From Convolutriloba macropyga (taxonomy: Eukaryota), in assembly GCF_964194025.1 (NCBI RefSeq), contig NC_134481.1:31062001-31126000 (forward strand): DNA of 64,000 nucleotides. The letters run 5' to 3'. Below are positions 7,701-16,700 of the stretch, in pieces; position 1 is the first letter of the stretch, and each line of letters begins with the position of its first letter. Below the pieces are notes generated by a model. The model had not been told where the DNA came from. It saw nothing but the letters and a program-made list of their open reading frames with translations, and ran no database searches. The translations under genes were made by a program, and so were the position numbers.

Positions 7701-10700
7701 TTATATAGGAAGTAAGAAATGTGTTAAAAAATCAACATATTAAGCGAAAAGTTATTCAAGATTTATCTGCTGAAATATAAATTCCTCTCAGCAGCTGTCA
7801 ATCCGTTTCTTAAATAAATTTCAGCAATAAAACGCGCCAAGAGTTCCGAATTGGAAATAAAAATCCAATATATACAATCAAATAATTCAACTATTAATTT
7901 CTATTTTCTGAATTCCGTTTTTTTTCGGCTCCGGGCCGCTCGGCTTTTTATCCTAGCTCCTTCAAACAGATATGCAATTGTGAATAGTAAATGCAATTGA
8001 TTAGAAGCAAATTTATTCCTGGGCGTTGCACATTTGCTTGGAGGGGGGAGGATAGCAGGAAAAATTTGGTTCTCAAATTTGATGCATTAACGGACTTGAA
8101 GTACAGTTTTGATTGAAATGCCATAACTTTTGCTAACTGAGGAGCTGCGGCATTTGTCAGGTAAAAAATTGCGTCCGAAAAGGATCACAAATGACGTGGA
8201 TTGCATAAGACCCCGCTACAATTTAAACATACTCTGACCATTAAAATTACTTCTCGTGAATACCTAAAATTGCATTGAGAGATTAAAAAGCACATCGGAT
8301 GGCGAAGATAGTAAAGTGAGAGCTGATCAGAAAGAAGTCATTACGAGGCCAATCCTACATTTTGAGCCAGCAAATTTGCTTGGCGAAGTCAGCATTGTCC
8401 ACTCTCCCAAGTTTTAAGATAGGTTTTTATAGGCTTTTGCGGACAACAGTAACAGTGGCGCAAACTAGTTCAAATTTGCTCTGAATTGAAAGAATTTGTC
8501 ACAGATTTCTTCTTAAACTGATTAAAGGAGAAATAGTTGGCTATAATTGGATCTTTTTAATCAAAATTCAGTAAAGGGTAATTATAATTTTAATCCGTCA
8601 AAATTTTGAACATAAATTAAAGGTTCAAAACTTATCTTAAAGTGGGTTGAACTTAAAGTGAGGGATAATTATTCGTTTAATCAGTCAAGGCTTCTGAAAC
8701 GGATTAGAGATGAAAAATCGAGATATAATTAGTACTTCTCATCAAAATGGAGTGAGGGGTAATTATAATAATAATCAGTCAAAGTTTTGAACATATATTC
8801 AAAGTTAAAATGCAGTGATGACAATATCCCTGGTCACAAATTGGGGACATTTGTGACATAAAAACGTGATTTTTCGAGATCAGTGACAAAATTTTGTAGC
8901 GATTGTACGGAGCTTTTTTTTTGTCACTGTTGTCCACAATTTAACCAATTTTATGCCACGCGAGATGGGATGACAAAATATTGTCACTCGTGTTCGCAAA
9001 CGCCGATTCTGGTGAATTTGTAGGATTGGCGGCGTATTGGTAATTGAGAAGTTACCCCAACTAAGACAGCCTGGGTTCCATAAGTCTCGGCATCAATCGC
9101 AGTTGTGACATCAACTCGGCCATTAGACTGAATTGTGACAAAGTTGTTTGAGCTGCTCTGGCTCGGAGACAGAACCTCGCTCTGCTCTGAGAAGATGAGA
9201 CTACCAGTGTCCAAGTCCTCTGCCTCGATGGTCGCCAAGTTGTTCTGAGTTGTACCTTCATCGATATGAAGAGTCCTGAAAATAGGGCATAATGAGAATA
9301 ATGGCGTATATTCAAATGCTGACCTCTTTTCAACAATTGCCTCCCATATTGCAAAAGGAGATTCAATTTTTGAATATAATTAAAACAATCAATTTATTGA
9401 CCAACAGAACTAGGCTACTATGCAAATTTTTGAGTACTATATAATACAACGTTGAGTATAGTTTAAAAGGGGAAGCAATTCACCACGAAGTACCATAAGT
9501 GAGGTTGAAAAAAGATCAATTATTCATACTTGAAACTGTTGAAAAATGAAATAAGTTACACTCTCTTATTAGAGTTTTAATTTAAGCATGTTCTTAAATC
9601 AGCCTTAAATGTAATTTTTTTTATCTTTATGGTAAAGTACCTCATGATTTACAAAATTAAAAATATTTAGGGTTTATTTTTATATATGAGAATATAAACA
9701 AACAGCAATCCATTTGAATTCCTTAACTGTTCTCTCTGAGTGTGTCTCATTTTCTTGTACAACCCAAAGATAATTTTCTAATATTAAACCAGAAAAAAAT
9801 TAATATTTTGGCATATTAAAAAACATTTTTGTGTCAAAAAATACGTTCACCACAATCTGCAATTTTGAAGCTGAATTTTGCTAAGCAAGTTTGACTTGCG
9901 GTGAAGCGTGAATTTTTGATGTTCCGAACGAGATTTCATTCTTGTTTATCGGTTTACACTGAAAATATTGTTAGGTTTTACTCTTTTACTGTTTGCCAAG
10001 CTGTTACTTTTTGTTGCCAATGCAAATGCGTTCAAGCGAGAGGAAATAACATGTGCGTTCGCACAGATTGTTCTATAGCCCATTTCGCCGAGCGGTTAAG
10101 ACCTCTGGCCCGCGCCCCAGAGGTCGCTGGTTCGAAACCCGTCAAAGTCAGAACTTTTTTGCCCCCATAAAATTTTGTTTATGGTTTTTAGGTTAAACTT
10201 AATAGGTTTTTGACCCCTTTTTGACCTTCAACTAGAGATCAAAGATACGTTTGGCGGACGACCTTCTGGTTGTCTAATGCAGTAAAAAACATGCGGTTTT
10301 CTCTCGTATAGAGAGCTTATGGTTTTTTGTGTGTTATCGGAGGTAATGTTATTGTCTTGTACATTCGAGATACGCTTGTTACACATGTTTCTATACGTAA
10401 ATAGATCATGAAAATTTCTTCGTGAGTTTGTCTATGTCCCGATACATAGTAAAGCCTTACAAATTGAGTCTTGAATTTTATATACTTTTTCTTTCAAGAA
10501 ATATTCAAACTTATTTACTCGATACGAGAACGAGGCACAACATTTGGTCAACCGACCCGGATCTTCTTACTCTCAACAAGAAGGATCTCCTGCCAGATTG
10601 GAACCTAGCTAAGTTTAATGGTAATCCCTTGCAGTGGCATGAATGGTACGGCCAATTTAAGAGCGCTATTGATTCGCAGGCCCTAAGTGATGACATCAAG

Positions 10701-13700
10701 TTGACATATTTGAAAACTCTCGTAGTAGGTAAAGCCAAAGATGCCATTGCAGAATTCGCTTATTGTGGAAAAATGTACAGAGATGCACTGAAAACACTTA
10801 AGCGAAAGTTCGGACAACCCCAAGCAGTTGCCACTGCTCACCTTGACAAATTGGCAAACTACCCTTCAATTAAGATGCACAGCTCTGATCAAATCAACCA
10901 TTTTTCCACAACTGTCTCTAGTCTTGTTGGCGTCTTCAGGTCTTTGTCCTATGATGCAGATCTTCAGAGTTCATCACTCTTGAATCAGGCAGTTCAGAAA
11001 TTGCCACCAAATTTGAAGGAATCATGGTCACTGCACACCGTGAAAAGAGACTTGATTCGCCCTACAATGTTGGATTTCAACGACTGGTTGAAGGAAAGAG
11101 CGGAGGGTCATGATCGCATGAAAACCACTTCTTTCAGAAGCAAACCAGAAGACACCAACAGCAATGGTGCAGTAAAGACCAAAGTGTCTTCGAAAGTATT
11201 CGCGTCCAACTCGAAGTCATATAGTGTTAATAGGCAGTCTCAAAGTTCAAAGAATGATCACGCACCTTGCGTACTTTGTAAATCACAACATCCGATTTGG
11301 CGATGTCAGACTTTTAAGGAAAAAACTCCGACGCAGCGTGCTAAAATAGCCGCAGAGAACCAACTCTGCTTTTCTTGCTTGAATGGTAAGCATTCGTTTC
11401 GTACGTGTCCGAATCAGCGCAAATGTAATCGCGAAGGCTGTCGCAGTACCCATAACATCTTGCTGCATGGTGCTGAGCGGATTTTCCCAGCAAGCGGCCA
11501 AAACAAATCTGCTGATGCATCACAACCAAAAGTCAACACAACAAAAACGTCAACAACCACTGTAGACGATGCAAGTACTCACGGAACAAGCAGCACATCA
11601 GGACTCACATCGATCACTGATGTCAAGGGTCTTTTGCAGGTCCTCGAAGTCGATCTAGAGGGACAGTCACAGAAGTGCGCACGAGCACTTGTTCTCTGCG
11701 ATACAGCATGCAGTCACTCCTGGATCTCCAGTGAACTCGCAAAACGTCTCCATTTGAGAGGAACACCGTTCAATTTGACGGTGAACGGTATCAATACGCA
11801 AGAGACAATCAACACTGAAGCTGTTCAGGCCAAAGTGACCCCAATTGGTGAGAATACCTGTTCTCCGTTTGAGTTGTTGCCGTACGTGAAAGAAAACCTT
11901 CGCGTTGGGTCTGACAAAATTGATATCGTTACCCTGCAAGATAAATATCTTCATTTGAGTGTGTTACCTCCAAAGAGTTATGATTACGCGAACGTAGAGA
12001 TGATACTTGGTCAAGACGCGTACCACGCCATCCGCCCGCTCGAGTATTTCGAAACCGACTCGAAATCCTCTCCCGTTGCCGTTCGTTTACGGTTAGGATG
12101 GGTACTAAGTGGTCCAATGCCGTCAGCGTCCGGTCTAATCTCGACAAGTTTTAAAGCGGTAGTTGAACATGACTCTGAGTTGGCAACACAAATCAAATCG
12201 TGGTATGACATGGAATCATACGTGGCTGTTAAGCAAGTGGATCTGCGCTCAGCGTCCGACCGTCGAGCCGTCGAAATTCTCGATCAGTCAACCGTACACG
12301 AGAAAGGTCGTTACTTCGTTGGTATGTTGTGGTCTTCCGATGAAGTCAAACTTCCCAACAATTATTTTTCTGCATTGGTCCAGCTGAAGTCCTTAGAGAA
12401 GAGACTTAGTAAAGATCCCGACTTACGCGAACGCTACGCACAAACAATACGAGAAGATTTGAGTAAAAAGTATGTTGTTAAAGTGCAAACCGGTGAGAAA
12501 ACTGAGCATCAACCCGGCAGGAAATGGTATTTGCCGCATCATCCGGTCATGAACCCAAACAAACCTGGTAAGGTGCGAAGGGTCCTCAATGGTGCCTCCA
12601 AGTTTCAAGGAGTTTCTTTGAACAAAGTGCTGCTAACTGGTCCAGATCTTCTACAGAAATTGATTCACACGCTGATCAGATTCCGTCAGCATCAAATTGC
12701 GGTATCCGCTGACATCGAGGGAATGTTCCTGCAGGTAGGTGTGTTGCCATCTGATCAACCAGCTCTCCGTTTTTTGTGGCGGGAGGACCCCTCAAAGACC
12801 GTTGAGGTGTATCAGTACACTCGACACATCTTCGGCGCCAAAGACTCACCGACTTGCGCAAATTACGCGTTGCAGCGAACAGCACGAGATCATGAAAAAG
12901 AGTATCCAGACGCAGCAAAGGCAGTTCATGAAAAATTCTATATGGATGATTACCTGGACTCAATGGAATCTCCTGATGAGGTGCTCAAGCGGTCACGAGA
13001 CTTGGTCAAATTACTTAGTAAGGGTGGTTTCAAACTAACTAAGTTTATTAGTAACGTGCCAGGTTTTACTAGAAGAGCTTGAAGATCAATCAGTTGAGTC
13101 TGTTCGGAAAGTCATTGGTGCATCAATGGAAGAGTCATCCTCCCATGTTTTGGGATTAAAATGGGATCATACCAAAGACACTCTAGTAGTAAGTCGCGGC
13201 ACTTCTTGGGATTGCAGTAAAGCTGTCACGCAAAGGTTGGTTTTGAGTTTAGTAGCCAAAGTATTCGATCCCATTGGCTTAGTTGCTCCTTTTACCGTCA
13301 CAGCACGACTTCTCCTGAAAAATGTTTGGCGTTTACATGGTCAGAGCTGGGATAAAAGACTCCCCAATGAAATGACTGATCAATTCTCCTCCTGGAGTTC
13401 TGAGTTACCAACGCTGGCTTTGTTAACCATACCTCGCTGCTATTTTTCCGGTCCTTTTGAACACCTCGAATTGCACGTATTCGGAGATAGTTCTCAGGAA
13501 GTTTTTAGCGCAGTTGCGTTTTTGCGTGCACTTGTCAGTCCACCATCTGAAAATAAACGTACCGAACTTGCATTCGTGATTGGAAAAGCACGTGTCGCCC
13601 CAATGAAGACACTCACCGTGCCGAAGCTTGAACTACAGGCAATTTTGCTCGCAGCCCGATTGAGAGAAGAAATATGCAAAGCACTTACCGTACCTGTTCA

Positions 13701-16700
13701 AAACACGTTTATGTGGACAGATAGCACTACTGTCCTCCAATGGTTGAACTCACTGGACAAGCAACCGATATTTGTCGCAAACCGCGTCTCGGAGATTCTT
13801 GAAGGGACAAGTGTTGATCAATGGCATCATGTTGCATCTCATGCTAATCCAGCCGACGCAGGTACCAGAGGAATGTCTTCTGAAGCGCTCCAAAAAAGCA
13901 GTTGGTTGCATGGTCCCCAGTTTCTCCGAACGTCCGATTTCCCGTTCCAGCCGAATACCTATGTAGTCAAAAACATCAAATTGAAGAGTCATTCAACTGA
14001 AGCATCCCCTTCAGAGAAGACTTCCACTTTGATAACCGACGTTTTCAAAAGTGACTTTAGCCTTCCGTTCCGTAAGTTCAGTTCGTATCCTAAACTGCTT
14101 AGGATTCTTGCGTATTGCATGCGATTACTTCCTCGTCATCTCGCCTATCGGTCTTCTGGAAAGGAAATAGTTGATCCGGAAGAACTTAGCGCTGCAGAAC
14201 AAAAGCTGCAGTTAATTATTCAGTCTGAATCATTTCCCATTGAGCGACAGCAGCTTGCTCAAGAAAAACAAATTAACATGAAAAGCCGTATTGCCGTTTA
14301 CTCGCCGTTCATTGGACCTAGTGGCCTACTACGGTCCGCCGGTCGCATTAAACGACTCGCCGAAATTGACTTTGACTTGAAGCATCCAATAATACTTGAT
14401 GGACGCCATCCATTAGTTCTGTTGTTCCTACGCCACATGCATCTGAAACATCACCATGAAGGTATCGATTATCTCCGTGCACTTATCCAACAAAGATTTG
14501 CGCTCCTGAAACTTCGTTCAACACTCCGTTCTATTCGCTTCAGTTGCGTTCTTTGCCGAAAAAGAAATGCAACACCCGTCCAGCCGATGATGGCTGATCT
14601 TCCGTCTGAACGACTTGGGTTTCAGAGTCCGCCTTTCACCAACGTGGGTCTAGATTACTTTGGACCTTTTTACGTAACGATACGCCGCTCATCTGAGAAA
14701 AGATGGGGCTTCTTGTTCACATGTCTCACGACTCTTGCCGTGCATGTTGAGATAGCGCACTCGATGGATGCAAACACCTGCGTGATGGGTATCGAGCGAT
14801 TCATCGCACGCCGTGGAATGCCATCAGTAATCTGGTCAGATAATGGGACGAACTTTGTCGGTGCAGAAAAGGACCTATTGGCATGTCTGCTCAATTGGGA
14901 TGCAAAATTGATAGCTTCAAAACTCGCACAGAAGGGAATCAAATGGAAATTTAATCCGCCTGCGTCGCCGCATCATGGAGGCGTCTGGGAAAGGCTTGTG
15001 CGTAGTTTCAAGCGAACTTTGTACGCCATACTCGACAACCGCCGACTTACTGATGAAATACTTCATACGACTTTCTGTTTAGTCGAACAGACGCTGAATA
15101 ACCGCTCGCTGACGCCGGTTAGTTCCGACGCTAACGACTTCGACGCCTTGACGCCGAACCACTTCCTCCTTGGAAATCGCAGTTCCTGTTTGCCTTCACT
15201 CGCTCCGGTTGATGACTTTAACCATCGTAAGAGGTATGCTAGAGCGCAAGCTTACGCGAATGAGATTTGGAAGCGTTGGTTAAAAGAGTACGTCCCTGCG
15301 TTGAACCGCCGCCCCAAATGGAGAACTCAACCAACCGGAATGCTGAAAACTGGCGACTTAGTCTGGATAGTCGATGACAACAGCCCAAGGGGCCACTATC
15401 CGCTCGCTAGAGTTTCGAGTCTGCGTTACGGTAACGATGGAATTGCGCGATCTGCCGAAGTGCAAACACCAAACGGCACCCTATCCCGCCCCGTAATTAA
15501 TCTAATGCCTGTCTTAGAATCATCACTTTTGGGGTCGGAGGATGTTGCCAATGCAAATGCGTTCAAGCGAGAGGAAATAACATGTGCGTTCGCACAGATT
15601 GTTCTATAGCCCATTTCGCCGAGCGGTTAAGACCTCTGGCCCGCGCCCCAGAGGTCGCTGGTTCGAATCCCGTCAAAGTCAGAACTTTTTGCCCCCATAA
15701 AATTTTGTTTATGGTTTTTAGGTTAAACTTAATAGGTTTTTGACCCCTTTTTGACCTTCAACTAGAGATCAAAGATACGTTTGGCGGACGACCTTCTGGT
15801 TGTCTAATGCAGTAAAAAACATGCGGTTTTCTCTCGTATAGAGAGCTTATGGTTTTTTGTGTGTTATCGGAGGTAGTGTTATTGTCTTGTACATTCGAGA
15901 TACGCTTGTTACACATGTTTCTATACGTAAATAGATCATGAAAATTTCTTCGTGAGTTTGTCTATGTCCCGATACATAGTAAAGCCTTACAAATTGAGTC
16001 TTGAATTTTATATACTTTTTCTTTCAAGAAATATTCAAACTTATTTACTCGATACGAGAACGAGGCACAACACTTTTCAAAATGTCCAATTTATTTCTGT
16101 GTACAAACTATACAAGAGCACTCAGTTTAAATTCAAGGTCGAATGCCCTGAGAGAATGTTTCCAACGAAATTGTTCATGTTCTTCCTAGAAATGGAACAA
16201 CAAAAATATTTTTCATCAAAAAAAAGAAGTTTCAAAAATAGAGTCACTTACATTTTGGGGTGCAATACAATCAGATGGACGGAATCCACCTGTTAGATGT
16301 CCAAATAATCCCAAAGCTTAACATTACCTAGAAATTTTTAGAAACCAACAAAAAAAAATGGTTTTTTTTTCGAGACCCTGATTTTCAACTAGCGTACTGT
16401 CATTGATTTCGTACAGAAAAAAGATTTCTTGGAGTTGCCTGCCTTTAGTTCGGATTTTAAAACAGTTAAAATTTCGTTGATCATTTTGAAGCAGCAATTT
16501 ATAAAAACGGGTAATTAGTTGTGTAAATTTAGAGCGTAAAGTGTCAGAAATTCGGATTGATTTTTTAAACAGATGTTGTTGCAAGCATGTATGATAACTT
16601 TATGAAACTGTCTGCTAGAGTCTCAGAGAACTAAACGCGCAATGATTGGTTAGTAAAGAACTGGTTTGAACTCAGATGTTCTTTCATTTGATGTTTGTTG

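Follow-up and report, generated by a model that had tools for sequence, protein, structure and literature searches.

A decayed, tRNA-derived unit with Pol III box geometry in the LTRs of a BEL/Pao retrotransposon family of the acoel Convolutriloba macropyga

Pieces of small RNA genes have so far been reported in LTRs only in tiny non-coding elements, such as Cassandra, Helenus and Ajax, in which they are read as Pol III promoters. The LTRs of Helenus (TRIMp3) carry tRNA-derived sequence with Pol III boxes, presumably with no functional tRNA, and it was proposed that this unit originated from the insertion of a SINE or tRNA-like sequence into the LTR (Kojima 2024, PMC10886601). These elements are 311-1263 bp long, non-coding and in need of Gypsy or Copia helpers, and it was argued that their autonomous partners need a Pol II promoter and probably do not have such LTR sequence in common with them (PMC10886601).

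The DNA analysed here, a 64-kb window of the genome of the acoel worm Convolutriloba macropyga (the whole stretch, to which all coordinates refer), contains a BEL/Pao retrotransposon copy with a tRNA-derived unit in both LTRs. Its features are the following:

10007..10011, + strand: target site duplication (TSD) CTTTT, 5′ copy, identical to the 5 nt at 16073-16077
10012..10542, + strand: 5′ LTR, 531 bp, TGTTG...CAACA, delimited by local alignment with 15543-16072
10078..10150, + strand: tRNA-derived unit, 73 nt, in U3 of the 5′ LTR; tRNA-Arg(TCT) match, no tRNA call
10085..10095, + strand: A-box-like TCGCCGAGCGG of the 5′ LTR unit, at unit position +8
10100..10125, + strand: 9-bp stem GACCTCTGG/CCAGAGGTC with an 8-nt loop, in the place of the anticodon arm (stem arms 10100-10108 and 10117-10125)
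10129..10139, + strand: B box GGTTCGAAACC of the 5′ LTR unit (family form GGTTCGAATCC)
10155..10160, + strand: T6 run, possible Pol III terminator, 5′ LTR
10161-10172, + strand: TATA-like GCCCCCATAAAA, directly after the T6 run
10422..13082, + strand: open frame with gag (DUF1759), protease and part of RT, lacking the N-terminal part
10545..10560, + strand: primer-binding site (PBS) TGGTCAACCGACCCGG
13126..15609, + strand: open frame with Peptidase_A17 (Pao), integrase and DUF5641
15531..15542, + strand: polypurine tract (PPT) GGGGTCGGAGGA
15543..16072, + strand: 3′ LTR, 530 bp, delimited by local alignment with the 5′ LTR
15609..15681, + strand: tRNA-derived unit in U3 of the 3′ LTR
15616..15626, + strand: A-box-like TCGCCGAGCGG of the 3′ LTR unit
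15660..15670, + strand: B box GGTTCGAATCC of the 3′ LTR unit
15686..15690, + strand: T5 run, 3′ LTR
16073..16077, + strand: TSD CTTTT, 3′ copy

The element combines a Pao-type pol (Peptidase_A17, DUF5641, integrase and RT) with a DUF1759 gag, as recognised by Pfam (PF05380, 1.2e-42; PF18701, 2.1e-22; PF03564, 3.2e-19; plus RVT_1 and rve), and it also has TG..CA ends, a 5-bp TSD, a PBS and a PPT. In local alignment, the two LTRs differ by 2 substitutions and 1 indel (one T). The 13126..15609 open frame, which differs in frame from that of 10422..13082, stops 67 nt into the 3′ LTR, and the G of its TAG stop is base 1 of the 3′ LTR unit. The original prediction had described a coding BEL/Pao element, and this stands for the BEL/Pao assignment and for the family, whose standard form is 9.6 kb with gag-pol (a single 2262-codon frame in one long copy), but not for the window copy. 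The latter is defective and not coding-competent: it lacks ~3.6 kb beside the PBS, with the deletion junction at about 10556-10563, and its frame is broken between 13082 and 13126. Neither the upstream 207-aa ORF nor the N-terminal 576 aa of the long polyprotein gave a Pfam match.

The unit lies 67 nt into the LTR, immediately behind the pol stop codon, and the sequence and coordinates predicted for it, its A box, stem, B box and T runs were confirmed in both LTRs. This double occurrence is not independent evidence, because reverse transcription copies the LTRs. The A-box-like TCGCCGAGCGG scores 9/11 against TRGCNNAGTGG, and the B box begins at unit position +52, placing the two box starts 44 nt apart. 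In its family form, GGTTCGAATCC, the B box is perfect; the A of AAACC occurs in the window 5′ LTR alone, the family form being AATCC. The T5/T6 run is found 15 nt past the B box and is kept in most family copies. These DNA signals agree with the standard layout of type-2 Pol III genes, in which an A box is expected near +8 to +19, a B box near +52 to +62 and a run of at least four T shortly downstream.

The origin of the unit can be traced to a tRNA. In older LTR copies of the family, 27 of 27 nt of CCAGAGGTCGCGGGTTCGAATCCCGTC are identical to the 3′ half of genomic tRNA-Arg(TCT) genes (26 of 27 in the window copy), and the T arm matches tRNA-Arg(TCT) of the C. macropyga genome. The 3′ two-thirds of the unit is closest to this tRNA; the Ser/Leu-type D arm once attributed to it is without support. 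ARAGORN detected 0 tRNA genes in the window, and Rfam, with matches up to E = 10 considered, returned no tRNA for the unit, nor for a 111-nt stretch. Neither program called a tRNA in older family copies, in sister-family units or in copies of the repeat Fam2 described below, and these searches yielded solely T-arm fragments matching tmRNA, plus chance matches. The unit's MFE fold differs from a cloverleaf (z -1.2 to -1.6), and the folds of the units compared are not cloverleaves either (z -0.1 to -1.2, against -2.6 for a real tRNA-Arg). Nor is there a 7-bp acceptor stem: 4 of its 7 pairs stay open in half or nearly all of the family copies. The loop in the anticodon place has 8 rather than 7 nt. 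The rejection by ARAGORN and Rfam agrees with the earlier statement that this is not a translating tRNA; the same negative searches, and a fold without cloverleaf, speak against calling it tRNA-shaped. On these sequence comparisons, the unit is a decayed, tRNA-derived copy that has ceased to encode a tRNA or an RNA shaped like one.

Its distribution was followed in an LTR sample drawn with a probe from the LTR 3′ end, outside the unit, which gave 74 LTR ends. The unit was present in 68 of the 72 aligned LTRs, including copies at 78-83% identity; the remaining 4 carry private deletions, and every LTR with an intact 5′ part has the unit. LTR-pair divergence in the family spans 0 to 10.6%, and across this range no active lineage of the window family was without it. 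These findings support a unit ancestral to the whole LTR family. There were 62 genome matches to the 5′ half of the unit, and all examined ones lay inside LTRs, 67 nt in. As its exact form was seen only inside LTRs, no free SINE copy was seen among these 62 examined matches; free copies with a tRNA-like 5′ head, as expected of a tRNA-derived SINE, were not found. The unit is LTR-restricted and family-wide in these samples, a point that the original prediction had proposed to check, and the head of an abundant free SINE, which it had named as a refutation, was not encountered among the matches examined.

Elsewhere in the genome, the T arm matches a tRNA-Arg array and Fam2, an abundant ~430-bp repeat of C. 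macropyga. The Fam2 core resembles the window LTR in its T arm, 14-nt spacer, T run and GCNCCCATAAA, and its downstream similarity to the LTR reached 11.6 vs 6.6 for shuffles (sd 1.4). For the 5′ half with the upstream flank, the value of 8.2 was not above that of shuffles (7.7), and further similarity outside the part from T arm to GCNCCCATAAA was not found. The possibility that Fam2 shares the whole module with the LTR was rejected, since the shuffle test supports only the stretch from T arm to GCNCCCATAAA.

The sister BEL families, which had also been proposed for comparison, proved informative. Among 11 sampled BEL/Pao families, that of the window included, 6 carry a tRNA-like unit at the same place in U3 (LTR +58 to +150). 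In all 6 units the B box is perfect, the A box scores 9-11/11 and the A-to-B distance is 42-44 nt, and at least 5 different tRNA-like bodies are represented among them. A run of T4 or more follows within 15-22 nt in 4 of the 6, with no nearby T run in the other 2. The pol tree places the unit-bearing families in two clades, and 3 were taken from an assembly with an LTR that matches nothing in the C. macropyga genome. In 5 sampled sister families, L161, L164 and L165 among them, the unit is absent, and 2 of the 5 (L161 and L169) have a CCAAT motif there. The LTRs of the window family and of the L159 family are 59% identical overall, yet GGTTCGAATCCCG is shared at 13/13. The families L162 and L163 are close in pol (branch lengths 0.011 and 0.03) and 81-83% identical in the LTR flanks, and their unit bodies are 50% identical, with a T arm matching at 15/15. 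Since different tRNA copies occupy this spot in five related families, the recurrence is probably not an accident.

The reading that we favour, with evenly balanced confidence, is that the U3 unit is a recurrent, tRNA-derived module in which Pol III/TFIIIC promoter elements have been retained. On this reading, a decayed tRNA copy was built into the U3 of a BEL/Pao LTR, directly past the pol stop, was already there in the common ancestor of the family and has been copied along in each transposition. At the corresponding U3 place, related BEL/Pao families have other tRNA-derived bodies with an unchanged A-to-B geometry. What matters would be the box pair, above all the B box, which may act on the DNA as an entry site for TFIIIC/Pol III beside the TATA-like promoter of the LTR, for example by keeping the LTR open or insulated. 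At most, a short RNA of ~80-90 nt without tRNA function would be produced. Four sequencing runs of unlabelled kind contained LTR sequence, with flat, fragmented, multi-copy coverage like that of DNA unitigs and no starts or ends. Recurrence at one place might reflect a permissive site rather than selection, which counts against the module reading, as do the changes at LTR rate, a mutated A box that still transposed, the unit-less families and the units without a T run.

A substantial minority of our confidence is kept for a neutral passenger, that is, a tRNA retrocopy or SINE head that landed past the pol stop in the 3′ U3 of a master copy, where additional DNA is harmless, and has been slowly decaying since, the same accident having occurred elsewhere at a permissive site. 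The pattern of change within the family is what such a passenger would show, as the unit substitution rate equals or exceeds the LTR average. Internal/terminal branch changes amounted to 63/148 for the unit vs 304/913 for the whole LTR, and to 12/29 for the A box and 7/26 for the B box, counts near the LTR background that therefore indicate no extra constraint on the boxes within the family. The unit is thus not slower to change than the remaining LTR, and the conservation of A box, B box and stem relative to the LTR, which had been proposed as a test, was not observed, all of them changing at the background rate. Pairs of the GACCTCTGG/CCAGAGGTC stem are kept in 54-67 of 64-67 copies, with one compensatory event in its 9 bp; for the suggested closure of the domain by GTTCT/AGAAC there were zero such events in family copies. 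A single compensatory event overall is too little to argue for structure. Mutations were also inherited through transposition: a lineage with the A box ...AGCAG, in which one G of the GG pair is lost, still yielded insertions, and a young subfamily broke the T-stem pair 51-63 and passed this on. The sister families without the unit also speak for a passenger, and since tRNA-like cores are very common in other genome repeats (at least 2065 first-look candidates for one family; 305 exact module matches), donors are plentiful. SINE insertion into an LTR is, in fact, the proposed origin of such units (Kojima 2024, PMC10886601). However, a passenger does not readily explain why a perfect B box and, 42-44 nt from it, a near-consensus A box persist in all six families, which have at least five bodies between them, nor why no active window-family lineage has dropped the unit. 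It is also opposed by the B box standing as a conserved island between families with such divergent LTRs, and again in L162 vs L163 despite their differing bodies.

It is improbable that the unit serves as a Pol III promoter for short non-autonomous offspring of the TRIMp3/Helenus kind that share the LTRs, the long elements being Pol II-transcribed and mere carriers. Exactly such LTR units are present in known TRIMp3 families (PMC10886601), and internal deletion derivatives do arise in this family, the window copy being one and a 5-kb copy in L042 another. However, no miniature member was found among ~75 family LTRs, in which the shortest pair spacing was 4.5 kb, one 2-kb spacing being a tandem duplication of the 3′ part, and the T run after the unit would stop Pol III inside the 5′ LTR. 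A tRNA-like RNA that lures away tRNA-fragment defence, signals packaging or priming, or offers a site for RNase P/Z processing is very improbable: its length and motif order are tRNA-like, and the sister unit L162 keeps the T arm and 4 acceptor pairs (fold z = -2.7), but the searches call none of the units and no cloverleaf folds, in all copies most acceptor-like positions do not pair, the 3′ acceptor/CCA end common to tRNA fragments and PBS is absent and cutting inside U3 would strip R from the genomic RNA, so that the structural mimic or decoy first suggested is unlikely for a unit that is not tRNA-shaped.

Beyond the module reading itself, a broader claim is put forward tentatively, and we regard it as rather doubtful: that autonomous acoel BEL/Pao elements repeatedly took tRNA-derived Pol III promoter modules into U3, even swapping them, and depend on TFIIIC/Pol III binding there, e.g., in resisting silencing or supporting the adjacent Pol II promoter. 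If this recruitment is true, the TRIMp3 idea would extend from miniature parasites to their coding relatives, which was deemed unlikely in 2024. If the boxes bind TFIIIC/Pol III, a Pol II-transcribed retroelement would be using the Pol III machinery in cis, and a plausible starting point for the origin of TRIMp3 would be at hand. For annotation, such units inflate the counts of tRNA-like and SINE-like sequence.

Among known systems, TFIIIC boundary elements fit a conserved B box within a drifting body. A lone B box can recruit TFIIIC and act on chromatin without a useful RNA, as in the yeast ETC sites and tRNA-gene insulators; the likeness is a functional analogy only. SINE2 heads are similar in being decayed tRNAs that keep A and B boxes at tRNA spacing and are missed by tRNA finders, their acceptor and anticodon parts drifting. 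However, a SINE2 head forms the 5′ end of a free, LINE-dependent element with no terminator directly behind, whereas this unit was seen only inside LTRs, at a fixed 67 nt from the start and with a T run behind. Cassandra and Ajax share with the window family a small-RNA-gene segment with a Pol III promoter in both LTRs, but their source is 5S rRNA and they are non-autonomous TRIMs of plants and nemerteans. The window family also resembles TRIMp3/Helenus, through tRNA-derived sequence with Pol III boxes in the LTRs. The novelty suggested at the outset is supported within the searchable literature, in which such units are described only in non-autonomous TRIMs (PMC10886601). Unlike those elements of less than ~1.3 kb, which are non-coding and mobilised in trans, the window family is a 9.6-kb coding BEL/Pao, and its unit, as judged by these features, is a further form of the Helenus/Cassandra kind, here in autonomous elements.

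Each LTR of the window's BEL/Pao element carries, 67 nt inside its boundary, a 73-nt unit (10078-10150 and 15609-15681), whose sequence was found as the original prediction had described it and which has the geometry of a Pol III gene. At unit position +8 lies an A-box-like TCGCCGAGCGG, after which come a 9-bp stem closed by an 8-nt loop, a B box at position +52, and, 15 nt further on, a T5/T6 run, directly beyond which lies the TATA-like GCCCCCATAAAA. The unit begins with the G that ends the pol stop codon TAG (15607-15609). Finding it in both LTRs does not count twice, since reverse transcription copies one U3. The element encodes the BEL/Pao set of Pfam domains (DUF1759, protease, RT, Peptidase_A17, integrase, and DUF5641) and is laid out as follows.

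Features of the BEL/Pao element (all + strand)
10007-10011 and 16073-16077: target duplication CTTTT, 5 bp, identical copies
10012-16072: whole BEL/Pao element, from the LTR pair
10012-10542: 5′ LTR, 531 bp, from LTR-LTR alignment, ends TGTTG...CAACA
10545: PBS TGGTCAACCGACCCGG
15531-15542: polypurine tract
15543-16072: 3′ LTR, 530 bp, from LTR-LTR alignment

The two LTRs are two substitutions and one T apart. Just upstream of the unit (10047-10068 and 15578-15599), it was observed a 22-nt near-palindrome, TGTGCGTTCGCACAGATTGTTC, which may be a protein-binding site, because it is identical in the related L159 family (about 9160-9181 of L159) and yet coding only in the window family.

The description of the element as coding holds for the family, in which at least one long copy has a single uninterrupted 2262-codon frame, and fails for the window copy. 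In other family copies the LTRs lie ~9.1 kb apart, and comparison with three long copies revealed that the window copy lacks ~3.6 kb directly after the PBS, which takes away the long leader, the upstream ORF of 207 aa, and ~577 N-terminal polyprotein codons. The deletion junction was confirmed by public-run contigs, which part from the window at 10556 and 10563, and a frame break lies between 13082 and 13126. Thus, the family is autonomous in kind and the window copy is a defective derivative. In the long copies (L045-L047), neither the ~207-aa ORF upstream of gag nor the ~577-aa N-terminal polyprotein extension had a Pfam match. Rearranged family copies were also observed (G000:C6:18094538-18104413, G000:C11:50149739-50151000, and G000:C5:24836029-24841184), in which the paired LTRs face opposite ways, the opening ~100 nt of an LTR stand in 3-4 tandem copies ahead of it, or the final 1.5 kb and LTR are duplicated in tandem.

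A genome search with the 5′ half of the unit, allowing up to 3 mismatches, returned 62 matches, and the reversed-pattern control none. Every examined locus matching the unit was a full LTR of the window family (81-100% identity), and not the abundant free SINE that the original prediction had considered as the adverse outcome. For an unbiased sample, a 27-nt probe was taken from the LTR 3′ end, so that copies were not chosen by the unit; it gave 74 matches, and 72 LTRs were aligned. The unit was present in 68 of them, including copies at 78-83% identity, and the remaining four had private deletions. LTR-pair divergence in the family ranges from 0 to 10.6%. The unit is therefore ancestral, was kept by every lineage that went on transposing, and does not stem from a recent SINE insertion.

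The constraint on the 68 LTRs was assessed by Fitch parsimony on a FastTree phylogeny, comparing changes on internal and terminal branches.

Internal / terminal changes and their ratio
tRNA-like unit: 63 / 148, 0.43
Whole LTR: 304 / 913, 0.33
A box: 12 / 29, 0.41
B box: 7 / 26, 0.27

Judged within the family alone, the unit gives no sign of stronger constraint than the remainder of the LTR; the extra conservation of A box, B box, and stem for which the original prediction had proposed to look was not found there, the 9-bp stem presenting one compensatory event. A lineage with the A box ...AGCAG gave several insertions.

Regarding the origin of the unit, a T-arm probe also matched the tandem tRNA-Arg(TCT) gene array. 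Older LTR copies have 27/27 nt in common with these genes and the window copy 26/27, over the anticodon-stem 3′ strand, the variable loop, and the T arm, a likeness that shows, at the sequence level, derivation from a tRNA. The D-arm half bears no close resemblance to Arg(TCT), and a Ser/Leu origin found no support. The array itself is large (period ~778 bp, G000:C6:20.69-21.08 Mb, loci L031 and L044), and one of its units in L031 (2832-2906) was read by ARAGORN with the anticodon CTA.

The tRNA structure has been lost. In the young subfamily, the window copy included, GCGGG became GCTGG, which breaks T-stem pair 51-63 in 50/67 copies. ARAGORN found no tRNA in the unit, nor did Rfam at E values up to 10, even with just 111 nt searched. 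The unit does not fold into a cloverleaf (z -1.2 to -1.6), as a genuine tRNA-Arg of this genome does (z -2.6). The unit is thus not "tRNA-shaped" as first described, and the proposed tRNA-finder check bore out that it is not a translating tRNA.

Outside the window family, the T arm matched an interspersed repeat of ~430 bp, with at least 2065 first-look candidates, whose tRNA-like core precedes a T run and GCACCCATAAAG. The spaced pattern B box-N10-22-TTTTTGCNCCCATAAA had 305 exact genome matches versus 0 in the control. From the T arm onward, the repeat scored 11.6 against the window LTR, versus 6.6 (sd 1.4) for shuffles, and the 5′ half was not above them (8.2 versus 7.7). For this reason, the claim is limited to tRNA-like donors being abundant in this genome and to a 3′ part that may be of common origin. 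Close to both of their ends, copies of the repeat (L137-L158, e.g., G000:C3:42048555-42054478) bear an inverted repeat of 16 nt (AATTGCTCTCGAACGA / TCGTTCGAGAGCAATT); some copies are 5′-truncated, and one array has a 1442-bp period.

A search with the second pol frame revealed hundreds of relatives. Ten related elements from public assemblies represented ten further families; P0018 and P0044 were additional copies of the window family, and assembly ERZ25071359 is of the same species, the acoel Convolutriloba macropyga, one of its loci matching a locus of this genome. The comparison with sister BEL families suggested in the original prediction was productive, since five of the ten carry a tRNA-like unit in U3.

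Further families with a tRNA-like U3 unit
L159: 75% pol identity, unit homologous to the window's
L160: 65% pol identity, unit present
L162, L163, L170: 60-62% pol identity, units present, from assembly ERZ25074608

This genome yielded at least 168 first-look candidates for the L159 LTR family and no match to the LTR from ERZ25074608. Downstream of the L159 element (L159:9680-12140), a 2.5-kb block of nested inverted repeats with many sub-threshold plant-miRNA-like Rfam matches is probably a repeat rich in hairpins rather than a set of miRNA genes. L161, L164, L165, L166, and L169 have no unit, and in L161 and L169 a CCAAT motif occupies its place; in the pol tree, carriers fall in two clades, each with a unit-less sister.

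Across all six carrier families, the window's included, the B box (GGTTCGANNCC) matches perfectly, 9-11 of 11 A-box positions agree with the consensus, and the A-to-B distance stays at 42-44 nt; a T4+ run follows within 15-22 nt in four. The unit bodies differ (at least five kinds among the six), none of the sister units was called a tRNA, and just one folds well. Overall identity between the window and L159 LTRs is 59%, yet GGTTCGAATCCCG agrees at 13/13 positions. Between L162 and L163, pol hardly differs (branch lengths 0.011 and 0.03), the LTR flanks are 81-83% identical, and the T arm agrees at 15/15, but identity is just 50% in the unit body, which, judged by these alignments, has either been replaced or evolves much faster than its surroundings. 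Comparison between families thus shows recurrence of the unit, with the B box aligning as a conserved island. Conserved boxes with a drifting or exchanged body would be expected of a promoter or TFIIIC site, and not of a structured RNA.

We give about an even chance to the reading in which the paired boxes would work at the DNA level as a TFIIIC/Pol III entry site in U3, adjoining the TATA-like motif, and would yield at most a short non-tRNA transcript. The main rival, in which the unit is a neutral passenger in a permissive stretch of U3, is a serious but less probable explanation. A promoter for miniature offspring is improbable, no such offspring having been seen. A structural tRNA mimic is very unlikely. 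The original observation was confirmed, and its interpretation supported in part.

In the open-access literature searched, no coding BEL/Pao element with a unit of this kind was found described, though an earlier Repbase-type note may exist. In a Culex Gypsy element, tandem tRNA copies lie at the PBS, a different case from a unit in U3. Kojima 2024 (PMC10886601) described tRNA- or 5S-derived LTR segments only in the non-coding TRIMs Helenus, Ajax, and Cassandra; according to that paper, their autonomous partners need a promoter for Pol II and probably do not have long LTR sequence in common with them. Like Helenus, the window family has a tRNA-derived LTR segment, but it is neither miniature nor non-coding.
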